DNA of 36,030 nucleotides, taken from contig FLMG01002924.1 of assembly GCA_900088475.1 (NCBI GenBank), forward strand, positions 1 to 36,030, given 5' to 3'. Shown piece by piece: positions 4,967-35,933 of the stretch (position 1 is its first letter; every line of letters begins with the position of its first letter). The notes beneath the pieces are model-generated. The model searched no databases. It saw only the letters and a list, made by a program, of their open reading frames with translations, and was not told where the DNA came from. Both the position numbers and the translations under genes were made by a program. The DNA comes from Hyphochytrium catenoides. Taxonomy: Eukaryota > Protista > Hyphochytriomycota.

Positions 4967-5001
<35 letters not shown>

Positions 5002-12879: not shown

Positions 12880-14952
12880 ATGACAATATGGATTCCTTTT
12901 ACCAAGTCCCGAAGGTTCTATCTGTACGCGATAATCCTCCTTTGCTGCGTAGTCGTGGTTCTTCCGTGCCCAACATTATCTGCACAGGGGCAATCGGGCT
13001 ACATATTGAGTAGTGTTGCCCGCGTCAGGAAGCTACAGTCCAATGTGACGGTGCCTCTACCAAGTACAGCGAACTCCACGTCTGCCTCTACCGCGGTCCC
13101 TACTGCTTCCCCTACTCCTAGGCCCACGGCTGTAGCAACCCCAGCCCCTACTACTCTTCAGCCAGTTATCACCGCTCGCTTTCGAAACTGCTATTATGGC
13201 CAACTCACTATGCCTCTTGGTAGTCACTCGTACACTTGGCTCCAGCTGGTGGCTCTGGGGATCCCAAACCCTATCACAGGCCTTGAGATCCCCGGAAACT
13301 TCCGTGTGCGGCTGTTCACTGGAGGAAACCTGAACGGCCGTGTGCTGACTGTCTACGGGCCGCGAACTATTCAGTGCTTTGCGGGCCCGCTGTTCCAGGT
13401 CATCAACTATTTTGCTTATTCAGTGGACATAACGCCATACACGGCGAAGGATTTAGAGCTCGAATCCCAGAGAGCCAAGAATGCATCCTATCAAGTCATA
13501 CTTCCTCCCGCTGCAAACAGCAGTGTGAACGCGACCAGAAGAGAAACGCTATACATTGCTGCTGACAATGAGTACCTTCTCTACGCCGACGGCATACCTC
13601 TAGGCTTCGGCAGCTCTGGCGTGCCAAGAATTGGCAACTATTCGGTACCCTTAGGAACCTTTATCGCCTTGAATATGACGAACTGGATTGGGGGAACACG
13701 TGGGATGAATGCTGCCGGCACAATCGTTGCCTGGGGGAACGTTATCTCCGACCTTACTTGGCGGTGCATTCCCTCGACAGCGATGAGGAATAGCTTAGAT
13801 GTGAGTTGGACATTGCCGGACTACGATGACAGTGCATGGCCCTATGCCCGAGGCTTTGGAAGCAAGATCTCAGCTCCTTGGCGTCGGGACCTTTTGCGCT
13901 CTCCTGCTGCTTCCTTTATCCCTAACGATGCCGAAAGAATATGGGACCTGAACTTCTCGGTGACTGCTTACTGCCGAATGGCACGAAATCGAAGCGCTGA
14001 ACTGGTCGTTCAGGCTCAGAACTATGCTCCACTCTACGTCTTCAGTGACGGAAGTTATGAACTCTATGCAAATGGCAAGCTAGTGGGCAGTAACTACTGG
14101 CAGGTCGCCGGCGGAAAGTACATGATCCCCAGGGACGCTTTCCTCACTTTCTCTGTCTCTCAGCCGGGCAATGGCTCACGTGGGTTTGTCATGTACGGTG
14201 ATAGAGCGCTTGCTGGAAACGTTACTGACACATTGTGGAAGTGCACAAATGAGACCCTTGCCAATGAAGCGTGGAAGTTGAACGGCTATGATGACAGCAG
14301 TTGGCCAGGAGCTGTGAGTCAGGGACCAATGATCTTAGGCAACTTTAGGCCGCTCTACCCCGACAGCTGGCATTTCCTCTTCCCTACGTCTTCTCATTGG
14401 ATATGGGACGCTTCATCGTCCACTTCGGTATCTTGCAGGCAGCCACCAATCCCATCTAAAGTGAATACTACCTTAGTCGGGACTCTCCAGCCTACGTCTG
14501 CTCCTGCGGCTCCTGCTGCGACACCTGACGAGGAGTCCGTACCAGCAGTGATGGTGTCGTTCCGCCCACCGACCCTTCCTCCCGGCATCAAGGGTGAGGC
14601 TCCTGGCTGTGGCGTAGCCATCCTTTTCCCCCTCTAATGTGTTATGTTAGGTCATCAGTCATCTGCACCTGTCTAACTTTTTCTCTCCTTTACCCATTAT
14701 TCACCTGTTATTGCCCGCAGGCATCGAGCTCTCTGCGACATCTCAACTATCCGATGATCTGGCCTACCTCCTTATAAGCTTCTCGATCCCTCCTCTCTAC
14801 GGTGGCGACAGTGTCAACGGAAGGTTTCCCTGTTCCAGACATATAGAGAATGCTAACTTACTTTTGGGACCAGCAGGTATGTAGGTGAAAATAGTTAAGC
14901 ATTGGCGGGCTCGCCAAAGGGAAGCAATAGAAAGAGACGGGAAAGGAAAGAA

Positions 14953-14988
<36 letters not shown>

Positions 14989-17900
14989 GGAGAGTATAAG
15001 AATGAAGAAAAGACAAGGGGGAGATAGAGAGAGAAAGAGAGAGGCAAACAAGAGAGAGAGAGAGCACAAAGAAGGGAAGGGAAAAGACCTTATCAATCTG
15101 GAGAAGAGCATTGGAGATGCTAAGCCACAGCATCATTGTAACATTCTCCTCGCCCTCTCCTGCTAACCCTATCCTCTCTCCTTTTCCCCTTTCCAAAAGA
15201 CACGTCAGGGATGAACTGCGACTGGCTGAACGAAAGCACTTTACGGGCTTCACTTTCGTCTGACGCCTCGATACTTCCGGGCCAGAGAGTGTCATTAGTC
15301 GCCGCATCCTTTTCCTATCCGATCATCTCGCCTAATGTTGTCGTTAAAGCGCCTAATCATCCGCAGCCAGTTGCATTGACCATAGAAGCTCCGGTCAAGC
15401 TGGGACCAGTAAGAGTTTATCCCTAGCGTTATACCTATCTTGCAGCGTTTTGCCTGGCAACGTACATCCCGCCATATCCCATCCAGGCCTTTCTCATCGT
15501 TGCTCAAGAGATCGCCCTTCTAATCTCTTGACATCGTCGCGCTTCGTTCTCTAGACTTAGGCTTTCTTTCTCTTTCTGTTGAGTTCCCAAGAATCAATAA
15601 CTGTTTCCCTCTTCCTGCCACCATTCGCCTCCCGCTCCCCCGTAGTCTGAGGCCTACTAGTGACCTGTCCCTGATTGTTATCTCTCTGTTCTCATCCAGT
15701 GCAACGATCTCCGGGTCCGTGTTGGTTATGTTAGCGGCTCGGGCGGCAGACCTGTCACATATCGCTGGTCTCTCCAGGGAAATGCTGGCGATGAGATCAA
15801 TAACAAGCTGGAGCAGATCAACGCTGGACAAGGTAGTAGATTATCCTTGTAGGGATCCTCACCTTAAGTGCAGCTCCGTACATATGTACTGAATGCGCGC
15901 TCTCCTTGCTCTATGCCTCGTTTGCCATAGGGAAAGATGCATTGGATATCCCTTCAGCGCTTCTCCCAGCTGGGTCGAACCATACCATAAGCGTCACCGC
16001 GTATAACTTTCTCAACCACTCGGCATCCCGCTCTGTATACGTGATGAAAGCCATACGGCCTCTGCCTGCTGTCTCAATAGAGGGAGGAAGGGAAAGGAGT
16101 GTAAACAATCCCTCTCTCCGGACGATAATTAGGGCGTCGGTCTCTGCTTCATCTAACGATTCTTCTTGTGGGAGTTCCCTGGCCTCCCAGGAGATAGAGA
16201 TGCGATGGCAGCAAGTTCAGCCATATCCAGGGTGAGGATTTCACCATCATTGTATCTCCTTCCTTCCATTCTCCGAATGTCGTGTGCCCGCTTTGAGGGC
16301 CGCAGACAGCAGTTGTTCTCTTCTCCATTGGCACTCAAGATCGTCCCTCACAGTCGACTCAAGAGAGATCGGTCATGGCCCGCTAATATCTCTTTATATT
16401 TTCTAGGGGGAAGAGCCTGGAGTTGCTATCTTCGACTTCTGCGAGCCGCACGGTCCTCGTCCTCCCAGGAGGCGTTCTATTACCTGGAACAGCTTACACT
16501 TTCTTACTCTCCTCTAACTATCGCGGTCAAAATGAGACCGTCGATGTGCCGGTACACTAGGGGAGAAGGCCTCTCACTCCTTATCGTCTATATCCTCCCG
16601 CTCGTTGTGTTTCCACTATCATGGCGCTGCCATGCTGCCGGATACCTATCGCTCCTTCTTGCATAGTTGGTCCTTATCTGCTTCTCAGAAACGAGAAGGG
16701 CTGGCCCTTCCCTAACAGTCCATTGAGTTCCTTTTCTTTCGGGTCTTGGCTTTATTGGTCTTACTGCGGGCCAACATAAGGGCACGTCTCTGACGTCCCG
16801 TGACTTTCTTCATCTCTCAGGTCACTATCACCGTCGGATACGCTCCTCTCTCTTTATCTCCCATTGGAGGCTGGAATAGGTCTTCTTCCTCCCTCTCTCC
16901 TCTTACGGTTGGGTTGACGGCAGTGGGATCAGGGAGGCTGGACCTGATGGGCATTGATACCATTGAATGGGTGAGTTAGTTTGCCCCTATATCGCTTGTT
17001 TCGAGCACTCTGTCGGGATCGAGCTCTGAGGGAAGGCCTGCTAATGAATGAGCTTTCAACCTTCTTCTCGCATTCATTGGCAGAGATTTCTAGTGGCCTC
17101 TTACTGGCAGGCAGTCCCTTCACATCGTGGCGCTGTACTCAATGTACCCTTCTTCCTTTGGCAAGAGCTAATCTTTGATCATAATCTTGTCATTCGGTAG
17201 AGTTGTTCTGCATGCGCGTCCTTTGACTGCAGTAGGATTCTTGCTCCTTCAACCTGCGTCACTGCTAGCGGGCATCCTATAAGCCTTCCATCGCCGTCAT
17301 GGAAGACAGCCTTCCTTTCTTTTGGGCCAGGCGTCTTCAAGAGTAAGCCGTCAGTCCTGTCGCAATCAACTTGTCTCTCTGAATGTTCCATTTCCTTCTA
17401 CGTGACTTTCTCTTATCGAGTGACAGTTTGCCTCTCACTTCTTTTAAGAAGCAGCTTCCTGTACGCCCGTGGCTGCGTGCTCTCCTTCTCTGTCCTCTAT
17501 AATGTGTGTCCGCACTCTATCCATTCACTTTCCTTTATTACTCTGCTAAACCAAACCTAGATGGCCAAACCTACCAGTTCTACCTAGCAGTGAAGGGCCA
17601 GAGCGGGCTGGCAAGGTTCTTCTCCACTATTTCTGTTGAAGCAGATGCCCTTCCTGTCTCTCTTTCCGTGCTAACTTCTGGAGGCAGAATCAACAGGTCG
17701 GGTCTTGCTTTTCTCTACATCTTTATGCAAGGTCTTTGCACCTGCTTGTTGTTCATTCTCCCAACTTATGGGGACTCGCAGTGCTTTATTTCTTCTCTTC
17801 CGCCTTGCGCTAAAGCTCTGAGTCCCATTCTATTCCTCCTGCGATTGTGACCGAATGGGCTGTTGTTTGATCTACGGAGCTCTACTCTCCTAGACAACTG

Positions 17901-20316
17901 CATCGTATGGCCTGCCAAGACTAACTCCTACGTCTGCACACAGCGGCCAACCGGTTCGGCTCAATGCAGATTCCACAGCTTGGGAAACAGATGAGAGCAG
18001 AGCTGGCCTCCACACAGAGTGGAAAGTTTACAAGGGTGACAGTCTTGTCTATCCTCTGCTTGCGCATACTGTTATCAACGGAACGAGACTATCTATCGGC
18101 CCAAGCTTCTTTAGCCCAGACTCTGCATATACCTTCACCTTCTCCTTCTCATCAGCCGGAGGACAAAAGGGCGTGGCTTCTCTACTGGTGGCTCTGAACG
18201 GCGGTCCTCGCTCTGGGTCATTTGCAGCTGTTCCTCAAACGGGAACTGCGCTTTCTACTCTCTTCCATTTGTCCGCAGACAACTGGGTCGATGACCTGCA
18301 AGATTTACCGCTCACGTGAGAGACTCAGCATCAGCCTTCTTCTTCATCTTTACCTGCCACCATGAAACATCAGCCACTCTCTCAAGTCTCGGTTGCCAGT
18401 CTTCTGCCAGAAGCTGCTCTGTCTTCACCGCCACAATTCCCATTGCTCCTCGTAGGCGGCTATCTGTGCAACCAAGGCGTTGTTTGCATTTTCTAACTCT
18501 CTCGCTGCGGCTTGGTTTCCCCTATGCAGGTACACCTTCGGCATCAAAAGGTCTGGAACCACCTATCCCCTTATGGCGCCCTCTCCTGACAAGTCTCTCG
18601 ACGTACGTATACTTTTCTTGTCTCATCATCCATGCAATTGCCCTTGAGCTCAAGCGATGGTCTCACATGCCAATTCGACAATGTTGGTTCACAGTCGCTA
18701 CTACCTGAACTCTCTGGCGGAGAGTCCGCTGTCCTCGTTGTCTCTGATATCCACGGAGCTACCACGGAGGCGGAAGTGGAGATCACTGTGACCTCGTCAA
18801 TGGACTGGGATGCCAGCTTCGGCTCAGTTCTCTCCTCAATTAGCAGAAGAGACGTTTCAGAAGGTCAGTTCTTCCCGGCCATTGCCAGCCACTTGTTGAC
18901 TCTTTAAGGATCCACTGGCCCAGCTCAATCATTTGGTCGCTTCTGGCTGGAGCTAGCCGTTTGTCTCCGATGAGGTCATAGAATTCACTCACCCTGTCTT
19001 GCCTAACAGAGCGCTGTTTGACCACGTTATTGGTCTTGGACATCGAGTGGTGCCGGCAAGTGTTGCCAGAGCTCAATTGCACTGCCCAGAGTAAGTCGCG
19101 GTCTACCCCTTCTCTGCATAGTCTCTTTAGTCTTTACCTCTTTCTGTCTCTCCTCTTCACTCCTGGGGAATGCTCTTCTGCTCAATTCTCATCATCATCA
19201 AGGAACATCCTCATTTAGGTGCACCGTTGACCCGTTCGTGGCTCTTTCCAGGTGACCGCTTGTGCTGCTCGAATAGTGGAGCTTACTGGAAGTCATGCTC
19301 AGGATCAGCTTCCGAATGTAGCGGCAAATGTATCTGTGACCCTGGGGCGTTTGGGAAGGACTGCGGGGAAGACCATGATTTGTGGACCCTAAGGTAGAGA
19401 AAATGGAGAGCTAAAGATATAAAGGTCTTACCACGTTGCCACGTACTCCGAGTGACGAGGAAAGAAGCCGACTCTACTTTCTTTCATTGCCTGCACAGGC
19501 AATTCCAACATCCCACTTTTTATCAGGTGTCTTTTCTACTCTTTCCGACTGACCATCTAATAGAAGACCGCTCTATCTGCCTTGAATGCGCTGGCGATCA
19601 CAATGTCAATGGATCCCATCAGAGCTGCCCAACGAGAGCTCTTCGTCTCTCAAGCCCTGCAACTGTTAAAGAGTCAAACCCTCAACAATACATCTGTCTC
19701 AGTCCTACCTTTTGAGGTTCAAACGGAGGTGCTATGGAGAATAAGTCAAGATACATGGCATCTGACAGACGAAACCATGGTACAGAGACGAAGTTTCCAT
19801 TAAAACTCCGCTCCTATGAAAGTGTTTAGTCGTGGCATGCGTGCTTTTGTTGGCTCACTGTCGTTTTCCTTTTGCTGCTCTTGGGCCTTCTTCTTGCACC
19901 TGCCTTTCCTCAATCAATCTTTGGCATTTCGTTGCAGGTCAAGGTTTTGGATGTCATCGAAGAGCTTCTGGAGGAGCAGCTGGCCGAGGAAGGTAGACCA
20001 GTCAAGTTCTTGCTTATGAGTCTTCTTTTGTCTGTTGCTGCACATCTTTTTTTCCTTCTAAGCAAGCTTGCTTTTCAGAGGCATTTGCCGTCTGTCTCTT
20101 GTTGAAGTGTCTGCTCCCACCCGGTGCTTCTCGCACTCTTCACGATCTATCTATTAACATGAGCAATGCTCTATCCCTCTTTCCTAACCGCTAGGTTCTT
20201 CTTCTCCTGCGGCTGTAGACAAGCTTTTGATGAGCGTCAGCAACCTCATCGAGGCTCTCGAGGATTTCCTGACTCTCGCGCCTCCACAGTCTTCGACGGT
20301 GCCGGCACGTCTTTAG
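12880..20316 (+). CDS. Secreted REJ/PKD-domain protein, copy A (signal peptide, PT stalk, beta/gamma-crystallin-like, 2x CBM67-like lectin, PKD/REJ, EGF-like, helical segment; no TM), ~1,418 aa, 17 exons
   Basis: Exons: 12880-14593, 14721-14876, 15200-15408, 15700-15832, 15931-16231, 16407-16551, 16821-16970, 17201-17342, 17561-17696, 17944-18315, 18530-18602, 18695-18863, 19010-19090, 19252-19393, 19623-19779, 19938-19992, 20195-20316. Total 4257 nt with an open frame throughout. REJ hallmark NGGPRSGSFAAVPQTGTALSTLFHLSADNWVDDLQDLPLTYTFG...VSDIHGA; EGF-like CSGKCICDPGAFGKDC; N-terminal hydrophobic YLYAIILLCCVVVVLP. The 3' end is the least certain part. Confidence 0.8.
13171..13437 (+). other. 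beta/gamma-crystallin-like module of copy A (counterpart at ~22840-23090 in copy B)
   Basis: FRNCYYGQLTMPLGSHSYTWLQLVALGIPNPITGLEIPGNFRVRLFTGGNLNGRVLTVYG...CF...INYFAYSVDI resembles the microbial crystallin pattern (CNYxG...G-x-Y-T-x-x-QL-x-ALGI-x-ND-x-ISSL-x-VP-x-G-Y-x-V-x-LY-x-x-x-NF-x-G). The Ca-binding NDxxSS motif is degenerate. Recognised by eye only. Confidence 0.55.
13540..14445 (+). other. Two tandem lectin-like modules (CBM67 / fungal-lectin-like beta-sandwich) of copy A; counterpart at ~23180-24080 in copy B
   Basis: Each repeat reads Y-I-x-x-D-N/G-x-Y-x-L-Y-A-D/N-G ... D-x-x-W-R/K-C ... W-x-x-x-x-Y-D-D-S-x-W-P-x-A ... W/R-I-W-D ... C-R. Four copies across the two genes. Confidence 0.6.
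14940..15065. repeat. (GA)n-rich tract in intron 2 of REJ copy A
   Basis: Direct reading; absent from the homologous intron (24674-24956) of copy B. Confidence 0.9.
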
Positions 20317-22504
20317 GTTAAAATAGCTTATGTGACCGTCGGACAGCCGTAGACTCAGTAGTTGAAAGCAGTCTTTTGGTGGAGTCTTTATGAAATAGAT
20401 CATGAACCCAATCCTCAAGGACTGCGAAGACAGGCAGATTGCAAGCGACAGAAGCCGTCCGGGCACGCAGTACCAGGAATATAAAAGCTTGGATTCGCTG
20501 CTAGTGATAGTGCACCACTAGGTGAAGGAGAGACTTGAGAGCCAATAGAGCAGATCCTTGACCGTGTGCTTATTGGGACTTTCTAGCTTGATCGCCTTCT
20601 TGTCCATCCATGCCTAGAAGCGAGTAGCCCACTCTGGTGGTTGGGTTCGTTCTCTTTAACCCATTCTACTGGTGGCTCAATCGGAATTCTTTTATGAAGA
20701 CAATGCAAAGTATCGTCTCCTATTCACGTTTTAATAATGGACAGCAGATAATGATAACCAGCCTCTGGGCATCCTTCCAACCATTTGCATCGCACAGACC
20801 ACATCGAGCTGGATAGATTGACATGTACATGGCTAGATCGATAGGGAGGTAGGTGCAGGTGTGTACCTAGATTGAGAGTAATGCACAGGGGGAAGAGCCT
20901 AGACAGAATATAGACCTTCGAAGACGGCAAGTCATGTCTCACACCTTCTCTATGACATGTACTATGGCAAAAAAGAGGGTATGCAAGAAGACAACATGAA
21001 GCAGAAACGGCCCAACCCCTGGAGGCGGGCGACACGGCTTCCTCCCCAAAATCCTGGTCGCTCTACGACATCATTCACGAGTGAAGACCTCTGATCAATT
21101 TGTGACGACTTTACTCTCACGGCAGGAGCACGCAGGAGGAACGGTATGCTCATGTTCTTCCCTCCTAAATGGTCAGAGTCAGAACGCAAAGTTGCGGCTG
21201 CCACGACCTCCATCAGCTTTCCGCAGGACAGAGTCTACCGCCGGCAGATCTGAAGATGCAGATTCTCTGCCTCTGCTGGTTGTTGGTGGGCTGCGCCTTT
21301 CGAACTCTTCTGGGTATATCTCACTAATAACGGAATCTCTTCGATTACTACAAATAGATTATCGAGTTAAGCATGGAAAATAGTCTCTGCCTTGCAGTTA
21401 TGGAGCCACTGTTCCTTCCTTCCAGCGTCAGTTACAGAAGAAGACAGAGGCAGGCCTAACTCCTTGCAGCCCAAACTGACTGCCTTCCTTCCTCCTTCGT
21501 CCTCCTCCACCTCACTGCTCCATACTAGCCCGAGAAGAATGCCAACGCACTAGAGGAGCTTTGAGATAATGAACCAACCAGGCCCACGGGTCTAGCTGGG
21601 CTTCTTGCCTAAGAGTACACAGCGGCAGGACGGAGGACTACTACTATGATAATGCACCACGCCTGATGATAACCCTAACGAGCTCTTCTTCTCGTCGGAG
21701 TAGTTGAAGGCTCGTAAGCAAGAAGAGGGTCAGCCAGTGTCTACGAGTGGGGAAACCGACAACAGAGTGGTCGTTGTTGCTGCTGTTCTTGTCTCTCCCC
21801 CGCCAGCGGACGAACGGGCTGTTTGCCGACGTCGGCTGTCTGTGTGGATCAAGGTGTACCAGTAATGTCACAACCGGTAAAAGAGGTAGTTTGCACTCTT
21901 CCTTCAGTCCTCTCCTTCTTCCTCCTCCTCCTTCAAAAGCACTGTGGTGATGACGACCGCTTACTGATGGCTAATTGTGCAGGTGGAAACGGTAGATGGG
22001 CTCGCCACTAGTAGTAAGATTTGCCCTGGACATGGGAGGAACGGACACACTGGTTCTGTCTCCCCGGGAGGCATTATCCCACTGTTTCCTTCGGAAACGG
22101 TTTCGAAGCACCCTTTATCCTTCTATGGCAACTTCTCTCTGTATCCACACCTGCCAAGTTAGCAGAAGGACATGGTGGCAATGGTGGCCGAAGGAGCAAT
22201 GGAGCAGTTAGACTCTGCAAACGAGGCAGCGATGATAACAGAAGGCCTCACTCTGGGCTGGAAATGGAGGAAGTCGCTTACCAATAGTCTGGTGCAGGGC
22301 AGCTCGCCAAGGAGCTTAGCGCTGCCGCCATTTCAAGAGCAGAACAGGGAACTCGTGGAGATTTTGAGGTTGATTCAAGGGTCAACAGGGAGCGGTGAGG
22401 CGCCACATTGTCGGTCTCTTTCTTCTCATCCCACAAGAGACAGAAAAGCCCTATAAGAATCACTCAAAGGCCCACCATCCACCTCGTGAGAAATCCGGAG
22501 AAGG

Positions 22505-25500
22505 ATGCCGCCGCCAAGCGAGCGCTGTACCGCCCCTGCTGTTTATACTTTGAAGAGGAAATGGCTGTTGATTCTTCTCTCTGCTCTCCTCGCCATCGAG
22601 GGGACAACAACTGGTGGTACACTTATGGTAGAAGCCCAGACAACGGATACACAGAGCGATGTCATGGAGTTCTTTATGACTTTGCTTGGCACTATCTTAG
22701 GTGTCGAAAAGAAGGCTCCTAGACCCACCCCAGCGCCAAGCCCTGCACCAACAAGGATACCGACGCCTGCCCCTACCCCTTGGCCAAGCTCAGGACCTAA
22801 GCCAGCACCGACCCCAAAGCCCACGACCCCCAGCCCTGTGATCTATCTCAACATTGGTCACTGCTACAAGAGTCCTGCCAGAGTCGCTGTTAACGTGAGA
22901 AACTATACCAACTACTCTGACCCAATCACCGGCACCCAGATTCCCCCTCGCATCCGAGTGAAGTTCTATTCTGGCACCTTCTTGAATGGCTCTGTTCTGA
23001 CAATATATGGTCCAAGGTTCATTCGGTGCTTCAGCGGTCCGCTCTTCAACGTCATCAACCAATCGGCCTATTCCTTGGATATCAGCCCGTACACACAAAA
23101 AGACTTAGCTATAGAAGCCCAGATACCAACAAATGCATCTTACCAAGTCATTCTGCCGCCCACCTCTAACAATACCGAGAGACAGAAGCTCTATATCTCT
23201 GTCGATAATGAATACCTTCTCTATGCAGACGGAGTACCCTTGGGAGGAGGCTCGTTCTGGCCTGCAATCCATACCTATTCTATTCCATCCGACGCTTATA
23301 TCGCCTTAAGTATCATCAACCATGGCGGTGGCCTAGGAACAGCGGGTGCCCTGGTCAAATGGGGCTCAGTAGTCTCTGACCACTCCTGGCGTTGCATCGC
23401 AGCGGACGCCCTGGACCCATTAGACGTGAGTTGGACGCTGCCGGATTACAACGATAGCTTTTGGCCCTATGCACGGGGTCATGGGACGAAGATGTCATCT
23501 CCCTGGTTTGGACGGCTTGTAGAGTCACCATACTTTAATCAGATTGACTTTGACGCCCAGTGGATCTGGGACTCTAACTTCTCCAAGAACGCCTACTGCC
23601 GCATGTCACGAACCTATAATGCTACCCTAGCTATGCAGGCTGAGCAGTATGAGCCAGTGTACATCCATGCGGATAACAGTTACGAGCTCTTCGCAAATGG
23701 CCTTTTCGTGGGCAGCAACACGTTTACCTGGGTGGGCGCCAGGTACCTCATTCCGAAAGGCGCCTTCCTATCCGTCAAGGCTAACAATACGCTGACTCCG
23801 GACTTCCGTGGAGTGATAATCTATGCTGACCGACAGCTGCCAGGCAACGTGACAAATCTGAAGTGGAAGTGTACTGATTACGGTCAACTCGGCACTGACG
23901 CTTGGAAATATGAGCACTATGGTGATAGTGGTTGGCAGTTTCCTAAGACTTATGGGACTTACTTCATGAGCCCTTGGCGAGGCGGGATGATGCCCAACAC
24001 GTGGTACTACCTGTTTCCGTCAAATGCTTTCTGGATTTGGGATACAGTGAACTCCACCGTTGTGGCTTGCCGTCAGCCTCCATTAACGGAAAATGCAACT
24101 CCTTCGGCACCTAGTACTCCTCTTCCAACCGTAGGACCCACACCAGCTTTCACCCTCGCTCCGACTCCGCAGCCTTACTTTGGGCCAACCCTTCCGCCGA
24201 CGCCTGTTCCAACACCTTTGGGTAGGTCCCAAAACAAAGAACTCTTATCCTGCGCTTATAGTTCTTCCTGTCCACCGTTATGTACGCAACTGCCACTTTC
24301 GGGGACTATGAGTTCTGCACCGATGCCCTTATCATTCGAACGATTGAGCTTCCTCATTTGATCCTAACAATATTCCTAGCTGAGTCAAGCTGCCGCACCT
24401 GTATATATCTTTTTCTTTCCTTCGTTGCATTGTCCACCATTGGTTGGCCCATGCGTCCACTAACTGTTACCTTTCTTGCTCCACCCTCTTCGGTCTCTAT
24501 CTGTCTCTTGGTAGCATCAAATAGCCCGTCTCTGGTGTACTCGACCTGCCAGTTCTCGGACGATCTTCGCTACCTGTTTTTTTCGTTTTCGAGTTCGACA
24601 TGGGCGAATACGAGCACGGAAAGCTTTCCTTGCTCTGACTATTTGGAAAGCGCAGCCTCTTTAGGTCAATCAGGTAGGCAACCTACCACATCTTTGGGAG
24701 CTCATGAGTCAATGATGTTCACCATGAGGGTAGGGCTTACTGAGCTACAAGGTAGGGATATTAGACCATTTGGCTGCGAGAGATGTTCTTAGAATAGGAG
24801 AAGCAGGAGGGGCGCCTACTGAGTACATAAGCATCCCACGGAACGTTTGATGAAGCAAAGGGCGGAGATGCTAGATTCAGCTGTAGAATCGATGACTGAC
24901 AGCCTTCCTTCTCTATCGTCTTTATCACGGTGTTCACCTCTTCTCTCTTCCTTTAGATCCTGATGGTCAGAACTGCGATTGGCTAGATCCAAGGACCCTC
25001 CACGCAACCCTGGGCCTTGACGCGGAGGTTAAACCTGGTGATGTCCTAAACTTCAACGCTTCTTCCTTTCAAGTTCAACTAGCCACAACTGAGGTCTTAG
25101 TCAGCGGTCCTATCAACCCCTTGCCTATGACCTTGTCCATTAGCGGTCCCACTACTCTGGGGTTGGTACGTCCTAACTGGTGGTGTCTATCACAACCTTC
25201 TACATCTGTCCTCCCCTTCTTGTCTTGCTTCTCAGGGATCCTATATTGCTTCGGTGTATCTGCTATAGCGCTTTCTTTACTCTGTCGCCTCATAAGCCAT
25301 TCGTCACTCTCGCTGGCTGCATTACCAATCTTGGACTTCTTACATTCAATGAGTCACTGTTTGGCCAAGTAGGGCTCTCTTCAATATGTGAGGCTCGATG
25401 ACTGGTTTTGCCTTTGTATGAATACTGGTCTGGCTCTTTTGAATCTTCTATTGATGCTGCTCCTGGTCGCAAATCCTGTCAATACTCTTAGTGTACCGAT

Positions 25501-28500
25501 CTAAGAGTTCAAGTGGATCAAGTGACAGGGACCGGAGGTCGAGAGGTCACATACGGCTGGACTGTAGAGGATACGGAGGATGAGGAAATTCGCAAGCTGC
25601 TAAGTAACCTCAACATTGGAAGTGGTAAAGTGTACCTGACCTATCCCCAAGCTTCTCTGATCTTGAAGTATTTCTCTGTTACTCTTGCCACCTCTCTAGA
25701 CAGTAAGGAAGAGGTTTACCCTATCCTGCACATAGATTACGCCATTATGCTTGTTGGTACTCCTTAGGCCCTCTCGCTACCTTTGACCTCTCATGCCTAT
25801 ACGCTAACCCGGGAGTTCGCCTCGTCCTTGGCAGGGAAGAGCGCTCTGTATCTTCCTGCTTCCCTACTACTGCCAGGTAGTAACTATACAGTCGGCGTCA
25901 CGGTATCAAATTTCCTGCAGCAGTCAGTCAATGGGTCCATCACTGTGACCAAGCAACCAAAGCCTGTGCCTACCATATCAGTCGTAGGAGGACTCGAAAG
26001 GCATATCCGAAATCCATCTCTGCGTACAGATATCACCGCTCTTGTCTCACCTCCATCGGTCTATCCCGGATGTAACAACACCTTGTTAACGCAGTCTGTT
26101 GAGATGCGATGGGATCAGTCCCCTCCGTACCCTGGGTAGGTTTTTGATAGAGGATATGCAAGTATAGAGGAAGGGCAGGCCAATTTGCATTCCTAGCAGG
26201 AGACTCTACTTCTGGTTCAAGGAGTCATGCTCCATCGTACCATCTTCTCTGCCATTCTCTTGGTTTCCACGAAGACTCTGATGTCACTGACGAATGCATC
26301 TTTCTTCTTCCAACTGCTGCTTTCGTTCGGCTCGGCAATACATTCCACATCAGGGGGAAAGCGTTGACTCTTCTGACGTCCACAACTGAGACGAGTATAA
26401 CTCTAACAATCCCTGGGGGCACGCTTTTATCCGGAGAAACGTATGACTTGTCACTCTCGGTCAATTACCAGGGAGAGACTGACATGGTTGTCATTCCAGT
26501 AAGATCAATTCTTTTATGCCACTTCATTGCTTGCGTATAATGGTTGGCTTATCAAGACTGCCACCTGCTCCTCCCTGTCTTATCCGTCAATAACCTGCAG
26601 CTTAAGGTGACCGTAGACTCGGCACCTCTCTTCCTGTCTCCCATTGGTGGCTCCAACCAAAGCTGCTCCTCGCTTCTTCCAGCGACCATTGGTGTTGATA
26701 AATTGGGCCCAGGATCTTGGGAGCCATTGCACATTGGCGCCATTGAATGGGTGAGTATAACGAGGCTGCTCAACGCAGATAGCATCGCTCCCTCCGTTGA
26801 TGCACTCCTAAAGTTTGCTCCTCACCGTTTCTGTAGAGCTGCAAAGCATGCACTTCTCCACTCTGTGAAGCATTCCAGCCCTTCTCTACATGCCTATTAG
26901 CCGGCGGTACCCCTGCCACTCTTCCGACAGCGGGCTCAAAAACACCTAGCATCACTTTGCCAGCAGGCTCCCTCGTGGGTACGTAAAACCCTAACTTTCT
27001 CTTCTTCCTTTGGGCGACAATGTCTGGGTTCTTCTGCCTCCTCGTATCTCCACCTCTGTCTATCTGCCGGGAACAGTGCTCGTTGCACTTGCCTGCCTGA
27101 TCATAACTTCGCCACCCACCTTCAAAGCGTCCTTCTTCCTCTTCAGTGCGCCATCGTAAAGCTATCTGTAATCACACATTAAATCTGGTGCATTGGAGTT
27201 GTCTTATCTTGGAATGGGAATCATCTGTGACGAGCATCACGCTGGGTTCTGACCCGGGTTTCTCATTCTTCCTATCTCCATCTTGAAACTCAACACATTC
27301 GCAGAGGGGCAGACGTACCAGTTCAATATGACTGTTATCTCACAGACGTATACATCCTCGTTCCTGACAACCCTTTGGGTCGCTCCAAATGCGCTGCCTA
27401 CCTCTGTAAACTTGCTCACTTCGCAACCCAGGGTCAACAGGTAAAGTATCGAAGGGCGAAGGGCGAGAGAGTCTGGACATACATAATCATAGCTTCAGCG
27501 GTGGCAGATGTACTAGAGTCTTGCTCTTCCGTTGTTCTTGTCAGAGTGAAACTACTCTTTGTTCTACAACTATCTCTTTTAGATGGTTTCTCATTCCCTT
27601 TTCCTCGTCCAGCGATCAAATCGTGCGCCTCCGGTCGTTCATCAATTGGGGATCTGGACTAAGTAGGACAGGAACGGAAATGGAATGGAGCATCTACCAA
27701 GGCAACGCACTNNNNNNNNNNNNNNNNNNNNNNNNNNNNNNNNNNNNNNNNNNNNNNNNNNNNNNNNNNNNNNNNGGCAGCACTCTCTCTGTCGCCCCTG
27801 GACTCCTTCTTCCTGGCTCTACGTACACGTTTTCGTTCACCTTCTCCAGTAAAGACGGACAAAGAGGTGCAGCTTCTCTTCAACTTCACGTAAATGGAGG
27901 ACCCAAACCCGGTTCATTCGTCGTAGCCCCCGACAGGGGCTTGGCCATGTCTACTATCTTTCAACTGGAGGCCACCAATTGGGAGGATGACCTTCAGGAC
28001 CTGCCTCTTAGGTAAGGCGACTTACCTTAGACGAAATTTTGTACGCTTGCCCAAATCTGTTAAGAGCCGACGGACCAAGGCAGCTCCTCGTTGAAGCTGA
28101 CAAGCCCTGTCAGTCTATGTACTGTCAACCTTATAAGGCAGCTAACTTCTTCTCTCAGGTACTCGTTTGGCATCAAGAGGGACGGGATCATGTACCCTCT
28201 CACTGACCTCTCTCACCGTAACTACCTGGATGTAAGACGTACATGCTTATCATAGTCTTGGCAACCTCTTCAACTGACCAGTGGCTTTGAACCACTTCTA
28301 CTTTGCTCTTTCCACATCAGACTGTTCTCCCACAGATCGGTAACGGGGACAAGGTCTCGGTTCTTGTCTCGGATGCCTACGGCGCGACAACCGAGGCATC
28401 AACAGGTGTCTTGGTTGCTGCACCAGGAGACTGGCAGACCGCTTTTTCCTCTTGTCTCATGTCCCTTGATGATAAGAGAAAGAGCTATGGTACGTGGCTT

Positions 28501-31500
28501 CTTCCTCCCAAGGCTGCCGCTTCCATTCACTCCTCCCTGATACTACTACCAGTGTTTGGGATCTGGGGGCCATAATCACTTTATTGGCTGCCATTGTTCA
28601 TCGTCGACAGTCTTCCTCGAAAGAAAAATGCTGACAATCTATTATGGCCTTGGCCATTCATTTGTGCGTTTGCAGAAGAAAGGCTTCCAGTTCTTCTAAC
28701 GTTGCAGACAGAATGGGTCAATAGGGTTTCCCCGAAGCTTACATGTACCACTGAAAGTAAGATGCAGAGTCTCACCCTCAGATGTAGTCTGACTTCACAT
28801 CATCATTAAAAGATCCATATGGTCTTCTTTACTATCTTTCTGTTTGCTTTGACAACAGCTCCCTACTCAGCACGCTATTGCTCTGTCTGCTCTGGCCATC
28901 TTCAGCGCAGCGCTCATGCTGCTCAAACCTTGGTACTTACAAGACGAGCTGTTCACCTTGGAGCCCGGCATGTACTCCTCAATGTCATTGCGACGAAGGT
29001 GCTTTCGGCAAGAGCTGTTCAGAAGTGGCTCAAGAGAGAGATGCAAGGTAGGTGGGGGGCAGGCCTAGGAATTTACATAGTCCGAAGAGTGAAGAAAAGA
29101 GATAGGGAAGAAAGATATATATAGAACACAAAGAACCAAGCAAAAATTGCACCAAATATATGTGTCTTACCCCTGCCCGTCTTGCATGTGCTTCTTCTCT
29201 AGAACTGCAACCCAGCGCATTCTGCTTTCACACAGCATCGAGCTCATACAGAGCCAGAGAAAGACGCAAAGTTCTTCCTCACTCTCTCTAGCGGTAGAAA
29301 GCGAGCTTCTGTGGAGGACCTCACGAGACTACGCGCACTTAGAACTAGAGAGCATGGTAAGAGAGTGAGGCGGTCTGTGGCAAGTTGCTTCCTAGGAGTA
29401 TCCCGGGTTAAGAAGCATGGAGCGGCGCTGAAGTATTTGCCAGGGATGTCACGTAATTCTGTTTCTCATATATCGACCGTCTCGACTCAGGTCAAGCTTC
29501 TGGACATTCTTGAGGCGCTTCTGCAGGATGAGCTCGCGACCACAAGTAATGATTCGGTCTTTCTACTTCTGCAATGAGTTGGCCCGTTTCTGCTTCTTCA
29601 TGCCGTCTTTTATGTTCCTCGACAACTTATTGATAATAAACGAGGGGCCCTCGCCTCCTCTGCGTATAGTCTTCATCTTCTCACTGATGGTGATTCTTTC
29701 ACAGCAGCCCCAGGTGCTACTTTTGCTCTCACTGAGGGCAAGCTTTTGGACACGGTTAGCAACCTACTTCAGCGACTGGAGAGCTTATCCTCAGTATCAG
29801 CATCGGTATCACCTGCGATCGTGAAACAGATTGAAAGTGTGACTACCTTGATAGCCAGAGTAGCCATCAAAGACGCACTACCAGGGTACGGCCACTTCAG
29901 TTCTCCATCTTGCCCTCTAAAGCATAGCAGACCTGGTTGAAAGCTTCTGTTGGACTGTCAGCACCGTTCTTGTTACATAATAGCCTCTACCGGTCATCCT
30001 ATACTTTACCTCGTGCTCTACACTCCATCTGCTTACCTTTACCATGCTGCTATCCGTCCCTGACGCTTTCTACTCGGTCATCTCTCTTTAGTGAAAGAAA
30101 GCAAGTGCTACTAGCGGAGAACGTCCAACTGGCAGCCCAGGTAGGTACTTCTCTGTCAGCGCTGTAGTCTCCTTGACAAGCGCATCGTCTCCCATGTTTA
30201 CTGTTCAATTCACATATCTCATAGCTTGTGTTCTGCTATCCTCGTTCCGCAAATAGTGTCTGGAGGAGTGATATCCTCATTGTCTAACCCATTCCGCTTG
30301 CGTTACCGCTTCACATCCCTAGTGCGCCTCCGTCGGATCCATTGCCGGCGAGAAAGTCATGGTGCCGTTTCCCTACTATGACGGCCGCTTTGATGAGGTT
30401 GGGGGCGTCATTATTCCAGCCAGTCTTGCTTCAGACGTATCTGGCTCTCTCACCCAAGAGGCAGAAGTCAAAGTCATACTTATTCGGTACACGCTGAATC
30501 CTTACGGTGGCCTTGCAGCTGCTTCTACGACAGCTGGCAACAAGTAAGAAGATAGGGTCTCCTCCTCACTCCTGTGAATGATGTTGTCTGCTATATGTCT
30601 CTCGGGCTTGAACCGATGGCTACTCGGCTGTTCGTCGCTCACTCTTTGCCGTGGCTGACCTTCGAGCTTACGGATTTAATATAGCTCTGTCTTAATGCAT
30701 GTTTCTAGAGTATTATTGAATAGAAAGCTACTCTGTCTCCTGTTTACCTACCTTTCAGGCAGCTGACTTTGTCTTTTGCCTCACAGTCCAAACGTCTCGA
30801 CCCCTGTCTATGCCTTCAAGCTTTTAACTGAGACTGGGGAGGAAGTCCATCCTCACAGTCTGTCGTCTCCTTTAGCCGTTTACCTCCCTGACATGTCTGG
30901 GATCAATTACTACGCGTCCAACCCGCCACTGCCACAGTCGTTTTCCTTCATATGCGAGGAAGACTTCGAGGAGACCGTCAGCTTCACATGTACTGATGGG
31001 AAAACAGTCACCTATGAGGTAAGTCCGACAATTCGAAAGATGCCGGAGGGAAAGGAATGGGGTTTTTTCCTGCATGTGTGGGTACGCCAAAGGAGACAGA
31101 GAGAAAGGACGTCAGGAAAGAGACAAAGGCGCTTTGATCCTCCTACCTGTTAGCTTTATTCTTTTTGGCTGGTCACGTGTGACTGGGCATCATTCAGTCT
31201 TATTGGATCCTGCTTTGCTTCAATGGCCCGATCCGCAGCGCGTCTGTCTTGACGCTTTCAATTCCCTCTTAGGAGTCTATCGGCACTCCATCGTCCTTTC
31301 TTTCTGTTGACGTTTCCTTCTCCTTATCTGTCATCATGCTGATCCTCTCTCTGCTGCCAGTGTACTGGAGAACCTTATGCAGGGATACTCTACTGCGAGC
31401 TTCACTATGAGAAGGTTGAATGCGCCTATTGGAATAGTTCTACAGCCATGTGGCAGGACACTGTTTATGATGCCAAGGACATAGACAGCGTAAAGAGTGT

Positions 31501-34500
31501 TTGCCTATATGATACCTTCGGACCAGGTACACAAGAAGCTAATTCTTACCGTTTGGTTACGTTTGCTTCTTCTGCCCTCATCCTCTTGTTCCTGAGCAAC
31601 TAGCATGGTGGCTTTACTTGTTGCCAGATCTCAGCTATTATCTCTTCGTCCCTCGAACCAATCCTTCATTCCCATCGTCAACCTATCTACTCACGATATT
31701 CTTTAACCCTTCTACCGATGTATCTTCCCTCTAGCTTTTGCGGCTCAACCCGTCTACGCCATAGAGCACGCCAAAGCTGGCCCGGACAATTCTAACGCTC
31801 TAGCTGGTTTGATCACACCGAACACCACCTTGGAATCCCCCATTGCCGTCTTTATTGCGGTCGCGTTTCTTTGGAGTGTCCTCCTTCTTTCCCTTCTCAT
31901 CATCTTCTTTGGGTGGAAGAAAAGGAACGATTTCGAAAAGGCAAGACGCAGCTTGTATGTTGACAGTATTCCTGCTGTGATGGCTGCGCGACTGGAATGT
32001 CTACAGAGGGGCAAGAGCCGGAGAGACGAAGGTGATTGGGATGGAGGCTTCGGAAAGGAGAGCGAAATGTACATGGCCTCTTTACCCGCTGTCTCTACTC
32101 TTAATCCTGGTAACTTTGTGGCCAAAGACGTTGTAAACGCCACAATCGACCTCGCCACTTCCAGATTCAAGAAGATGGTGCTGAGATTGCAGAGCAACTT
32201 GTTTGCATGGTAAGAAGGTCAACCTGCATGAACAATGTCAAATGATAGTCATTTCTCACATGGAAGAGGGACTTAGAGATCGCATTACCTTAGCTAAGTA
32301 AACTCCTCCATTCTCTTCACTCTTTTGACCAAATTGCGGACTCACTAGGACCACCAAGGCTCCACACTTAAGAGAGAGCGTCAACATCCTCCTCAGTGAC
32401 GTTGAGCTTATGGTAAGTCCAATCCACCGACGTATATTGACCAGGTTGTCACACGGCAGTGCTATTGTGATGGCAATGTTCCTAGCTCTATGTCGTTCTT
32501 CCGCCCTTACTAAGACTGCCAAAATTGGACGGAGCCTGTAGCTCTCACGACCCGAGCTTCGCTCTACCTCGGACTGTCCATATCATTTGCTAATGCTAAC
32601 TCTCGTCTATCAACCTGCAGAGACCGTCACCGTTGCATCGCTTATTGGTCTTTGTGACACTTCTGGCGGTCCCTATGCTTGCGACCTCACTCGTCCTTTT
32701 CGGTAAGGGCTGCTCTTCACACTGATGACCGTCAGCTTATCATTGGACTGCCATTTTCAACCGCTGATGTTCACTCACGTTGCTGTGACTGTTGCTTCGT
32801 TATCTATCTTCTTTGCTTATTTGACGGAGTCATCTTCTTCTTGCTAAAGGACTTTGCTAAACCTAATCTGATGACCTGCAGGTAGCAGTCGGCTCAAGTC
32901 CAGAAGATTTTTCCCAACGGTTGCGGACGGAGTGTCAATGTTCATCCTGATCATTGTTCTCTCCGTTATCCTCTCTCTTTCTTTCACCTTGCTTCTCTCC
33001 TTGGGGTTTAGACTCGCCAAGAAGGCCAAAGTCTCTAAGAAAAGGTGAGAGGAGCTCTCAACACGTTCCCTTGTACTGACGTAAACTCCCAGCAGAGAAG
33101 CTTCAGTCAACTGACGAGTAATCCTATTGCAGATATGAAGACCTTGCGATATTGGATGAGATGGGAGAGATCACTGTTCCTGTCGAGTAAGAACTTATCC
33201 AATATCTCTTCTTGCAGATAGAGAGAATTGTCTAACAATTGTTCTTTTATATTGCTTCTCTTCTACCCGCTTTTAGGTGGGAAGGTACTCTCCATGCTTT
33301 GATGTTTCTCATGGAGAAACTTCGCCGCGCTGACTATAGACTGCAGGTGAGTCATCAAAAAGAACACCCAGCGTCAGTTTGAGAGGTTGGCAAGAAGGAG
33401 GAGAGTTGTGTGCAAAAGTCGACGCGGTCAAGAGAAAACTTTATGTGCTACAGCCAATTCTTGCACTTGGTTAATGTGCTTGACTAGACTCACACCGTGC
33501 TTGTTTCTTTTCTTCCCTTTTCTTTCTATTATTTAATCCAATATAGATGGCGTATACTAAGGCTGAGATTGACGGGTACGATGGATCTCCTCCACCGCCA
33601 GAGTATATCCAATTTGCGGAGGAAGAGAGGGCCCGTTTGCAGCATCTGGTAGAGACTGAGAAGCAGAAGTTGCCCCAGGATCTTCAGGACGAATTCAAGA
33701 AGGGAGAGAAGAAAAGCCTTCCCATTAACCACGCCAGACTACTATTGGTACACCCCATAGATCAGGTAAGGCAAAAAGGGAGACATGAGTCCATTGTCCT
33801 CGCTCATCCATCCCTTTCAGGATCTTTAGTCTTGCAAGTCGAATAATCTCCGTTCCCAATTCTCTTGTCTTGTTACCTCTCTTTACTGCCGAACTTCTGT
33901 TCATACTAGTTTCCACTAATAGACTAATCTATGGTTGGCGTGGACGCCCTCTTACTTGCTTAGGTTCACTACGTCTGCGAGATGGAGAATATCGGCTCCC
34001 GTCGTCGGCTTCTGAAGCTCTTCTTCATGCACTTCGGAGGACGCACCTCTCTTCCTACACCACCCTCCCAGTTTCGCCTTCAGTGGCTAGAGAAACTCAG
34101 TATTCTTGGATTTGCCCTCATTCTCTTGGTGACAACTGCCTGCGCTATTAGCTTTGGCTCTGTCGCCTTCCGGTCCGCCCAAAGCGCATGGCTGGGCATC
34201 AGTATTACCTGCATCATCATCAACATTCTACTGCTATCACCTCTGCTGCGCTTTTATAGAAGAGGTGCACTCCTCTCCCTCTCTCCCATACTCTCAAAGG
34301 CGATGTGGTTCCATTCAACATCTCCCTTGGGCAAGAATAAGGCAGGAAAAGGAAAACAGACAGCCGTTGAGGCATTGGAAGATGGCGTCTTTGGCGACGG
34401 TAAGCTGATGATCAGTATTTCACCTCAGGCACTGCAAGTTAGTGCTCCTTCTTCATCAGTGAACTTAAGGTTCATTTGTCCTTTGACCACATCTGGAAGC

Positions 34501-35933
34501 CTTGTTTTCTACTCTTACTCCCAACCTTTATTGCCTTTCTCTGTCTTTCGCTTTATGATGACGCTTCGTTTCCCTTTCCGTCCCGCTACGTTTTACTGAC
34601 CGGTACACCTCCCTAGCAGCTGACGTTGGACCCAGTGCCTTCCCAGTGATGGGATCCATAACGGTCTTCAAGGTATTTGCTGATCTTCTGTTTTGTACTA
34701 ACAGCCTAATAGGTCTAACCTCTCTCGCCTCCCAGGACACAGATGAAGTGGCAGAAAGAGACACGGCCAGGGCTAACAACATTGAGAAGGGCCTGAAAGA
34801 CAAGAGTAAGACGAGATGACCCTTCCTTTGATAGCCCGTATTGCCGTCGCTTGCTCTTATGGCGACAGATGGAGACGATCTTCATCTCTTTCGAAAGCAT
34901 TTTTCTATCAGAGATTCTTGCCGCCGCTAGCAAGCATCTCTAGTCCAGATACTACTTTTTTTTCTCTCCATCTTTCCTGGTTGGCTTCCTTACACTACTG
35001 GGGCGAGAGAGCCCAATCTGTCACACTTCGCCTTCTCTTTTGCTTTACTTTGTCTGCTTCACCCTCACTTCACGTCGTTTGATAGGTGCTCGAGCAAACA
35101 CTCAGCCCAGTGATGGCGCCAAGGAGAATGCATCGGACGATGCCAGGCACAATGATGAGACTAAGATAGAAGAGCTTGGGGAAGACCGTCGAGGGTCTTT
35201 TATCCAAGAAATGCGCAGGAAAAGCCAGCTCTTCTTAGCGAGAACCGGGATTATCAAGATGGAAGAAGAGGAACTTGCAACTGACAGAGTCACACCACGC
35301 GGGAGAGAGAGGCAATATCAAACGCAGTCCTCACGTGGCGAGGAAAGCAAGAAAGCAACCTTTTCTACAGCAGAAGCGGGCGAAGCTCACATTGACAGGA
35401 AGCCTAGAACTATTGAGGAAATGGAGAGCATCTTCCCTGGCCACGACAGTCAGAACAGAGGCAAGTATCATGACAGCTTCTCGCCGTCCACAGAAGTGCG
35501 AACACAAGATATGACCTCTACAGAGGCACGCGGAGAGAGGCGAGAGGAGCCAGATTTGCCCGAGAACCAGAGTAAAGCCCTTCGACCACAAATAGTGACA
35601 CAGAGTCCCCGTGGTCCGGCTGCAGGACAACCACTAGGGAATGAAAATGCCGCTTCTTTTGAGAGGGAGATGTCTGATACCCAGGAAAAACTGGGTGGCT
35701 TCTTTAGCTTAGGAGAAGAGAGGGAAGTAGGCGATGATGATGAAGTCGTAGGAAGCTTTCTGCCCTCGACTGCTCGGCCTCCTGTGCTCAAGAAGACTGC
35801 TACCATGACCTCCAGCAGCACTTTGGAAGATATACTCTCTTCCCCTTCGCATCATTCTCCTCTTGAAGCGTCTCCGGTAAGCCCGGCAAAGGCGAAGGTT
35901 CCGTCAGCTCCAAAGAAACTTAGCCAATGGTAA
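22505..35933 (+). CDS. Polycystin-1/REJ-like membrane receptor, copy B (signal peptide, PT stalk, crystallin-like, 2x CBM67-like lectin, PKD/REJ, EGF-like, GAIN/GPS-like, ~5 TM, disordered tail), ~2,500 aa, 32 exons
   Basis: Exons: 22505-24221, 24515-24673, 24957-25165, 25492-25624, 25835-26135, 26354-26498, 26601-26750, 26837-26978, 27305-27440, 27613-28011, 28159-28231, 28321-28489, 28676-28756, 28906-29047, 29203-29356, 29491-29545, 29705(or 29708/29714)-29885, 30092-30140, 30323-30543, 30787-31018, 31361-31526, 31735-32209, 32349-32412, 32621-32702, 32882-33044, 33133-33186, 33277-33346, 33547-33765, 33964-34399, 34617-34672, 34736-34805, 35086-35933. All phases are consistent. REJ motif NGGPKPGSFVVAPDRGLAMSTIFQLEATNWEDDLQDLPLRYSFG; GAIN-type YTLNPY; GPS-like CAYWNSSTAMW. 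An in-frame TGA at 22487 supports the ATG at 22505. Confidence 0.85.
27712..27775. other. Assembly gap (64 N) inside exon 10 of copy B
   Basis: Run of N. Confidence 1.
31361..31760 (+). other. Degenerate GPS-like motif of copy B
   Basis: Spliced sequence ECAYWNSSTAMWQDTVYDAKDIDSVKSVCLYDTFGP|AFAAQ lies about 35 aa before TM1. Confidence 0.7.
31840..34250 (+). other. About five transmembrane helices of copy B
   Basis: TM1 IAVFIAVAFLWSVLLLSLLIIFFGW; TM2 LLVFVTLLAVPMLATSLVLF; TM3 VSMFILIIVLSVILSLSFTLLLSLGF; TM4 LSILGFALILLVTTACAISFGSVAF; TM5 AWLGISITCIIINILLLSPLL. Confidence 0.7.

Follow-up and report, generated by a model that had tools for sequence, protein, structure and literature searches.

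A truncated, ectodomain-only paralog next to a full-length REJ membrane protein gene in the protist Hyphochytrium catenoides

In Hyphochytrium catenoides, two related multi-exon genes follow each other on the forward strand of contig FLMG01002924.1 (scaffold C934; assembly GCA_900088475.1). Copy A (12880-20316) encodes the ectodomain of a large surface protein and stops there, and copy B (22505-35933) continues into membrane-spanning segments. The locus raises the question of what the shorter gene is: a soluble protein maintained in its own right, one half of a working pair with its neighbor, a decaying duplicate, or the product of an incomplete gene model or a faulty assembly. We analyzed positions 1 to 36,030 of the contig (36,030 nucleotides (nt), hereafter the window; GC content ~50%, with a single run of N at 27712-27775), and all searches described as genome-wide covered the 61-Mb assembly of 4759 contigs. 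The reading that we prefer, with a probability of about 0.6, is that copy A is an anciently truncated, selectively maintained paralog, most likely encoding a secreted or wall/matrix glycan-binding protein without a membrane stalk.

We first compared the structures of the two genes. Exon borders were anchored on splice sites at equal offset in both copies and, for the 3' half of copy B, on splice sites common to paralogs on other scaffolds; an ab initio splice model without such homology anchors had over-split or over-extended the exons and was replaced by these paralog-shared sites. Copy A comprises 17 exons (4257 nt, 1418 aa; exons 1-9 at 12880-14593, 14721-14876, 15200-15408, 15700-15832, 15931-16231, 16407-16551, 16821-16970, 17201-17342 and 17561-17696; exons 10-17 at 17944-18315, 18530-18602, 18695-18863, 19010-19090, 19252-19393, 19623-19779, 19938-19992 and 20195-20316), and the clean frame of 1418 codons reported in the preliminary description of the locus was recovered in full. 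Copy B, also in a clean frame, comprises 30-31 exons (7584 nt and 2527 aa in the model of 31) rather than the 32 first proposed (exons 1-9 at 22505-24221, 24515-24673, 24957-25165, 25492-25624, 25835-26135, 26354-26498, 26601-26750, 26837-26978 and 27305-27440; exons 10-17 at 27613-28011, 28159-28231, 28321-28489, 28676-28756, 28906-29047, 29203-29356, 29491-29545 and 29705-29885; exons 18-24 at 30092-30140, 30323-30543, 30787-31018, 31361-31526, 31735-32209, 32349-32412 and 32621-32702; exons 25-31 at 32882-33044, 33133-33186, 33277-33346, 33547-33765, 33964-34399, 34647-34805 and 35086-35933). Its doubtful exon 30 (34647-34805) is phase-neutral, is unsupported by either of the full-length paralogs C and D described below, and may not exist. 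In these homology-anchored models all introns are GT-AG (16 in copy A and 30 in copy B). Every one of the 16 introns of copy A has a counterpart of the same phase in copy B, 14 of them at exactly the same column of the alignment and the remaining two no more than 3-4 columns apart, in linkers rich in indels, and the twelve equal exon lengths noted earlier (209, 133, 301, 145, 150, 142, 136, 73, 169, 81, 142 and 55 nt) were found again, at 42-64% DNA identity; exon 15 measures 157 nt in copy A and 154 nt in copy B.

Joined (spliced) proteins were used for frame checks, alignment, hydropathy, trees and dN/dS (the ratio of nonsynonymous to synonymous divergence), and Pfam, phmmer and structure prediction were run exon by exon, which reduces sensitivity, most of all for the intron-split GPS. 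Translated similarity between the copies is colinear from 13096-20018 in copy A to 22757-29571 in copy B, with 47% identity in exon 1 (E = 2e-136) and 44.6% identity over 1376 aligned codons. The introns are dissimilar, as had been stated, their sole match being a 40-nt one of low value. Nonsynonymous divergence between the copies is high (dN 0.53) and the NG86 estimate of dS is saturated and uninformative about recent history, in agreement with the claim that the copies are well diverged and the duplication old.

At its 3' end copy A stops where copy B goes on. Similarity of its last exon (20195-20316, +) to B, C and D persists for ~20 codons and then fades, and the exon closes on a TAG (20314-20316) that lies opposite a Glu in copy B, as first reported; past this position copy B runs 22 further codons to its donor. 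Copy A ends inside the helical segment preceding the GPS-like region. The truncation does not hinge on this one codon, as the next in-frame stop follows 11 codons on and the other two frames are closed too. The spacer between the copies (20317-22504) is unique: a genome-wide search returned one match, itself, and no repeat or transposon. It has no N run and gives no clear sign of coding, and no trace of exon 18 or later exons was recognized in it. When all open-frame pieces of copy B from 29500 on were compared by tblastn with 20001-22504, only noise was obtained (best E = 0.003, on the opposite strand), and codon scores in the spacer were mostly ≤ 0.1 bit/codon on both strands, against an exon average of ~0.17 that makes this score a weak discriminator; the earlier statement that 20317-22504 holds no GPS or transmembrane (TM) exons for copy A was upheld. 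As expected at this age, comparison of the spacer with the upstream flank of copy A as a test for a tandem segment gave no similarity.

These data bear on whether the model of copy A is merely incomplete, its transcript continuing from a donor at 20298/20299 or from exon 16/17 into exons 17-19 onward of copy B, or into unrecognised exons. The phases would permit such splicing, with exon 16 ending in phase 1, exon 17 of copy B starting in phase 1 and the donor at 20298 leaving phase 0, although compatible phases follow simply from the paralogs sharing them. Were the transcript to run on into TM exons, copy A would be a second ectodomain cassette for a membrane receptor. We consider this quite improbable: no TM-like coding exon was seen in the spacer, copy B has its own ATG and predicted signal peptide, and the splice would need an intron of ~9.7 kb, compared with a genome mean of 208 bp (PMC5795050) and 86-342 bp in the two gene models (n = 46). 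An alternative model of copy A that reads through intron 15 to a stop at 20105 and includes 'TM-like' stretches was also rejected, because these stretches come from translating polypyrimidine tracts, which lie within introns in copies B and C.

To place the two genes among their relatives, the genome was searched with the N-terminal head of copy A, and four copies were found: A, B, C (on C2064) and D (on C3402). Paralog C (G000:C2064, ~8550-23912, -) is full length; it has the exon-intron structure of copy B and stays colinear with it right through to the 3' end. The 49-nt mini-exon 18 of paralog C is interrupted by an assembly gap, and a further gap precedes the last exon. Intron 2 of copy A holds a long (GA)n/(AG)n microsatellite (14930-15070), and the corresponding stretch of paralog C has an assembly gap bordered by comparable CT-rich tracts. 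Paralog D lies over two scaffolds, with its head at G000:C3402:859-2277 (-) and exons 5-31 at G000:C3626:2-8973 (+). C3626 starts inside exon 5, is colinear with copy B through the last exon, and is most likely the continuation of paralog D; exons 2-4 are unaccounted for in the two scaffolds, and a long Pro/Thr-rich repeat run with many overlapping matches stands upstream of the D head. Three of the four paralogs (B, C and D) are accordingly full length, and copy A is the only truncated one.

The same survey addresses the concern that the 3' half of copy A might be missing or misjoined in the assembly. The H. catenoides genome was assembled with Platanus from short reads of a heterozygous diploid with a single-nucleotide polymorphism frequency of ~2.75% (PMC5795050), and within this very family paralog D is split and paralog C is gapped, so that an artefact of this kind is conceivable. 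It is nonetheless highly improbable, given that no N run occurs between A and B, that the paralogs, ~50% diverged at the DNA level, are too far apart to collapse together, and that the four heads found genome-wide are matched by three full-length tails, all accounted for by B, C and D.

A maximum-likelihood tree of exons 1-17 was nearly star-shaped, with B and C grouping together (support 81/84) and a terminal branch of 0.63 for copy A versus 0.42-0.56 for the others. The outgroup was a distant REJ paralog on the short scaffold C599 (G000:C599:623-3734, +), 27-38% identical to exons 4, 5 and 10 of copy B; it is a weak outgroup, with a branch too long to fix the root. Because the tree is close to a star and copy B groups, weakly, with C, which lies on another scaffold, copies A and B are neighbors but not demonstrably each other's closest relatives, and the earlier view of them as a special pair gives way to that of a four-member family.

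We then examined what copy A would encode. A predicted signal peptide with a hydrophobic core at 12922-12978 (+; aa 15-33) scores 2.57 by Kyte-Doolittle 19-mer hydropathy. This core is the only strong hydrophobic stretch of the protein; one weak segment lies inside the REJ module, and hydropathy at the C-terminus peaks at 1.05. As there is no hydrophobic C-terminus, a glycosylphosphatidylinositol signal is absent. By hydropathy, copy A therefore has the composition first suggested for it, a signal peptide followed by an ectodomain with no TM helix, and the ectodomain carries 22 N-glycosylation sequons. Exon 1 (12880-14593) encodes Pro/Thr-rich stalks, a beta/gamma-crystallin-like domain and two tandem lectin-like beta-sandwich modules. 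An AlphaFold model of this head, built from the four heads and 16 distant matches, reached a predicted local distance difference test score of 80-95 over residues 100-520, and Foldseek matched it to solved lectins (6t1d, 6li7, 6kc2; E = 2e-6 to 1e-5, probability ~1.0), among them the two-domain lectin of Pleurotus ostreatus (6t1d, 6li7), a fungal CBM67-type lectin for Gal, GalNAc and rhamnose, and to rhamnosidases (2okx, 3w5n; E = 3e-4 to 5e-4), the low whole-chain TM-scores of these matches being an effect of domain orientation. The crystallin domain, a double Greek-key fold, matched 1nps, 3sny and 3hzb over ~90 residues (TM-score on the target 0.78-0.81; root-mean-square deviation 2.5-2.8). 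The phmmer matches P0001 and P0002 carry Pfam Crystall, and the other phmmer matches of the head are bacterial secreted enzymes with C-terminal beta-sandwich tails. The lectin-like fold of the modeled head makes glycan binding plausible.

Downstream of the head, exon 10 of copy A (17944-18315, +) matches Pfam REJ (PF02010; E = 5.3e-11, 42 bits, cut-off 25), and six-frame searches gave REJ matches at 18059-18325 in copy A (49 bits) and 27536-28009 in copy B (51.6 bits). Exon 14 (19252-19393, +) encodes a Cys-rich EGF-like module with a weak EGF_2 match (E = 0.2), the cysteine pattern of which is kept in A, B, C and D. With a REJ module and a signal peptide and with neither a TM helix nor a GPS, copy A is a TM-less REJ protein.

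To evaluate whether such a gene is still in use, we assessed its integrity and its conservation relative to the other paralogs. The frame of copy A contains no stop in 4254 nt and 16/16 of its introns keep GT-AG borders; the gene is intact, in line with the clean frame noted earlier. Since 3.8% of single-base changes in its codons would create a stop, the probability of remaining stop-free under neutrality is 0.04 at 0.02 substitutions per site, below 0.04 thereafter and 0.0003 at 0.05, and ~45-50% of nucleotides differ between the exons of A and B. Copy A retains 20/21 cysteines conserved in the other paralogs. Where the other three paralogs are invariant, copy A agrees with them at 78% of head sites, and each of the others, tested likewise, at 78-81%; the corresponding values are 78% versus 84-90% for exons 5-11 (the REJ core), 67% versus 87-89% for exons 12-14, and 61% versus 80-87% for exons 15-17. 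This gradient would correspond to a head under full constraint, a REJ module under moderate constraint and a region near the cut that has long been relaxed, a pattern that fits an old truncation of a gene still used. In a phmmer search with exon 1 against 1.84 billion representatives, no ortholog was found and matches were at the level of modules only (best E = 4.7e-16).

A dead or dying relic, that is, an unexpressed or functionless truncated duplicate, would likewise be cut mid-domain, and copy A is the least conserved of the four paralogs, above all in exons 12-17, with a slightly longer branch, two short last exons and a stop right at a GT. The absence of any stop, frameshift or lost splice site despite ~50% nucleotide divergence from the paralogs, together with the retained cysteines and a head constrained as in the full-length genes, renders this explanation unlikely. 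Because selection has kept the frame intact, copy A is most likely functional, probably in a role independent of the membrane stalk.

We next characterized the membrane half that copy A lacks. The only assembly gap of the window (64 N, 27712-27775) falls inside the REJ-bearing exon 10 of copy B and leaves the frame intact: in alignments to A, C and D a high-scoring segment pair runs across it without a change of frame, and opposite the 21 X of copy B the exon alignment places exactly 21 residues in each of C and D, so the gap length appears consistent with continuity and frame. Hydropathy supported the description of copy B as a membrane receptor and marked it as a multi-pass protein, with five confident TM helices rather than 11: TM1 at 31848-31904 (hydropathy 2.93), TM2 at 32642-32698 (2.52) and TM3 at 32941-32997 (2.92), all kept in C and D, and a hairpin of TM4 and TM5 in exon 29 at 34111-34248 (2.14 and 2.34; all on the + strand). 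Exon 29 of copy B is 65-69% identical in C and D. In exons 18-29, B, C and D have in common a GPS-like segment right before TM1, five conserved hydrophobic helices and a charged tail. The cytoplasmic loop between TM3 and TM4 (33547-33765 and 33964-34100, +; exon 28 plus the beginning of exon 29) belongs to the best-conserved regions of B, C and D, with 11 consecutive invariant residues at the start of exon 29; it gave no Pfam or PDB-sequence match and may be a signaling or docking module. Pfam scans of exons 19-29 of copy B returned sub-threshold noise only, a profile of exon 29 found no match among PDB sequences, and an ESM Atlas search with this exon yielded unnamed clusters (top score 0.89) and no lead that could be used.

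In copy B, intron 21 (31527-31734) interrupts the GPS-like motif (31418-31751, +). A paralog on C4108 has a Pfam-positive GPS, the first half of which aligns to exon 21 (E = 1.1e-5); the EGF-like exon of copy B aligns upstream of that GPS in the expected order, on which basis the segment appears to be homologous to a GPS. Three paralogs elsewhere (C4108, C3463 and C1463) carry the canonical His-Leu-Thr (HL-T) triad, and B, C and D have at this place a shorter conserved motif without His-Leu; self-cleavage of copy B is doubtful because the triad is absent. The intron-split motif gave no match to PF01825 (GPS) in the window, exon by exon or in six frames, and five other loci of the genome do match. 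PLAT (PF01477) was not found in the window by either route, its single genome match lying on another scaffold, nor was PKD_channel (PF08016), which matches at ten loci elsewhere in the genome. Of the label 'polycystin-1-like' given to both genes, the part that rests on the REJ module therefore stands, and the part that would call for PLAT and PKD_channel domains and 11 TM helices does not.

Copy A had been likened to the N-terminal fragment shed by autoproteolysis, and it was proposed that A and B form a functional two-gene glycan-sensing or adhesion system in which a soluble ectodomain acts as decoy, ligand or co-receptor and replaces proteolytic release. The two genes do adjoin on the same strand, 2.2 kb apart, copy A is maintained by selection, and B, C and D, being without the HL-T triad, may not shed their own ectodomains. 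But the likeness to a shed fragment is weak, as copy A lacks the entire beta-sandwich and GPS part that docks the cleaved fragment on the stalk and B, C and D lack the triad needed for cleavage, and copy A is not specifically related to copy B. Tandem duplication yields adjacency whatever the function, and beyond adjacency the sequences appear to offer nothing specific in favor of this system, to which we give a low probability. A more elaborate version, with a somewhat lower one, is that B, C and D lost GPS self-cleavage and that copy A took over the role of the released fragment as a diffusible lectin competing or cooperating with the 5-TM receptors; if true, the polycystin/adhesion-receptor principle would here be divided between separate genes.

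Copy A, we infer, would have arisen most simply either by tandem duplication of a segment reaching from the promoter to the middle of exon 17 or by duplication of the whole gene and later deletion of the 3' part. A break inside exon 17 would have left an open frame ending shortly past it, and duplication of the promoter-to-mid-exon-17 segment is expected to place a truncated copy immediately before a full one. The product would be a soluble N-glycosylated protein with a signal peptide, laid out as Pro/Thr stalks, the crystallin-like domain, two lectin-like beta-sandwiches, a REJ module of ~700 aa, the EGF-like module and a pre-GPS helical stump. B, C and D would represent the full-length form, in which the same ectodomain is followed by a degenerate GPS-like segment, by five helices in the membrane and by a charged tail on the cytoplasmic side. 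Several points weigh against our reading of copy A as a maintained soluble paralog. The stop and the 3' end of the gene are read from a single assembly of short reads from a diploid; its longer branch (0.63 vs 0.42-0.56) makes relaxation throughout the gene possible; the protein breaks off partway through a structural segment, and its tail could be unstable as a result; and the lectin modules of the model were matched at the level of fold.

Comparison with known systems indicates which features of the family are unusual. The SpREJ proteins of sea urchin are a multi-paralog REJ set with 0 to 11 TM segments (Gunaratne et al. 2007, PMC1934368), and some of them carry N-terminal lectin domains as here; those domains are C-type, whereas the present head combines a crystallin-like domain with two beta-sandwiches similar to the Pleurotus lectin. 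A transcribed member, SpREJ10, contains a REJ module, is predicted to have no TM segment and lacks a GPS (PMC1934368). Copy A differs from it in belonging to a stramenopile protist and in being traceable exon by exon to a full-length 5-TM paralog, in tandem with one. Human polycystin-1 (PKD1) and PKD1-like proteins share with the present family a large glycosylated ectodomain with N-terminal lectin-type modules and a REJ module with, after it and immediately ahead of TM1, a GPS-type segment, but copy B is without the PLAT domain after TM1, the channel-like last six helices, detected PKD repeats and the HL-T triad, and copy A is without any membrane part. In Ectocarpus, Esi0130_0068 is a male-gamete-specific protein with REJ, GPS and 6-7 TM (PMC4700764), a stramenopile surface protein with few TM segments like copy B, so that the general build of copy B was already known in stramenopiles; it has a different head and a Pfam-detectable GPS, and no truncated soluble paralog of it has been described. 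The Pleurotus ostreatus lectin (6t1d, 6li7) and the sugar-binding modules of rhamnosidases (3w5n, 2okx) share the fold of the two beta-sandwiches of the head, which match them by fold at 13-18% sequence identity and are here fused to a REJ ectodomain.

REJ proteins without TM helices are known, as are truncated tandem duplicates, and copy A is in this respect a fairly ordinary outcome of gene duplication that by itself opens no new question; the less usual aspects are the head of the family and its PLAT-less, channel-less 5-TM body. The locus offers a clean, datable case in which a truncating duplication of a large multi-exon receptor gene appears to have given rise to a gene for a soluble lectin-like protein, with the intron-by-intron record preserved and constraint relaxing toward the cut end. 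It also adds to a lineage-specific family of PLAT-less, channel-less REJ receptors in a hyphochytrid and, for polycystin biology, provides a natural 'ectodomain alone' protein with which to seek binding partners.

The remainder of the window upstream of copy A contains other open frames and genes. An open frame at 562-1542 (+) matches Pfam Methyltransf_16 (lysine methyltransferase; E = 4.5e-16). A formin-like gene at 3431-6652 (-) has an FH2 domain (E = 8e-63) and a proline-rich stretch that also matches CCDC53; a WW domain is encoded by an open frame upstream, which probably belongs to the same gene, the frames being its exons. Between the formin gene and copy A, ankyrin-repeat open frames and a C2-domain open frame were found at 6707-7784 (-) and 9484-10866 (-).

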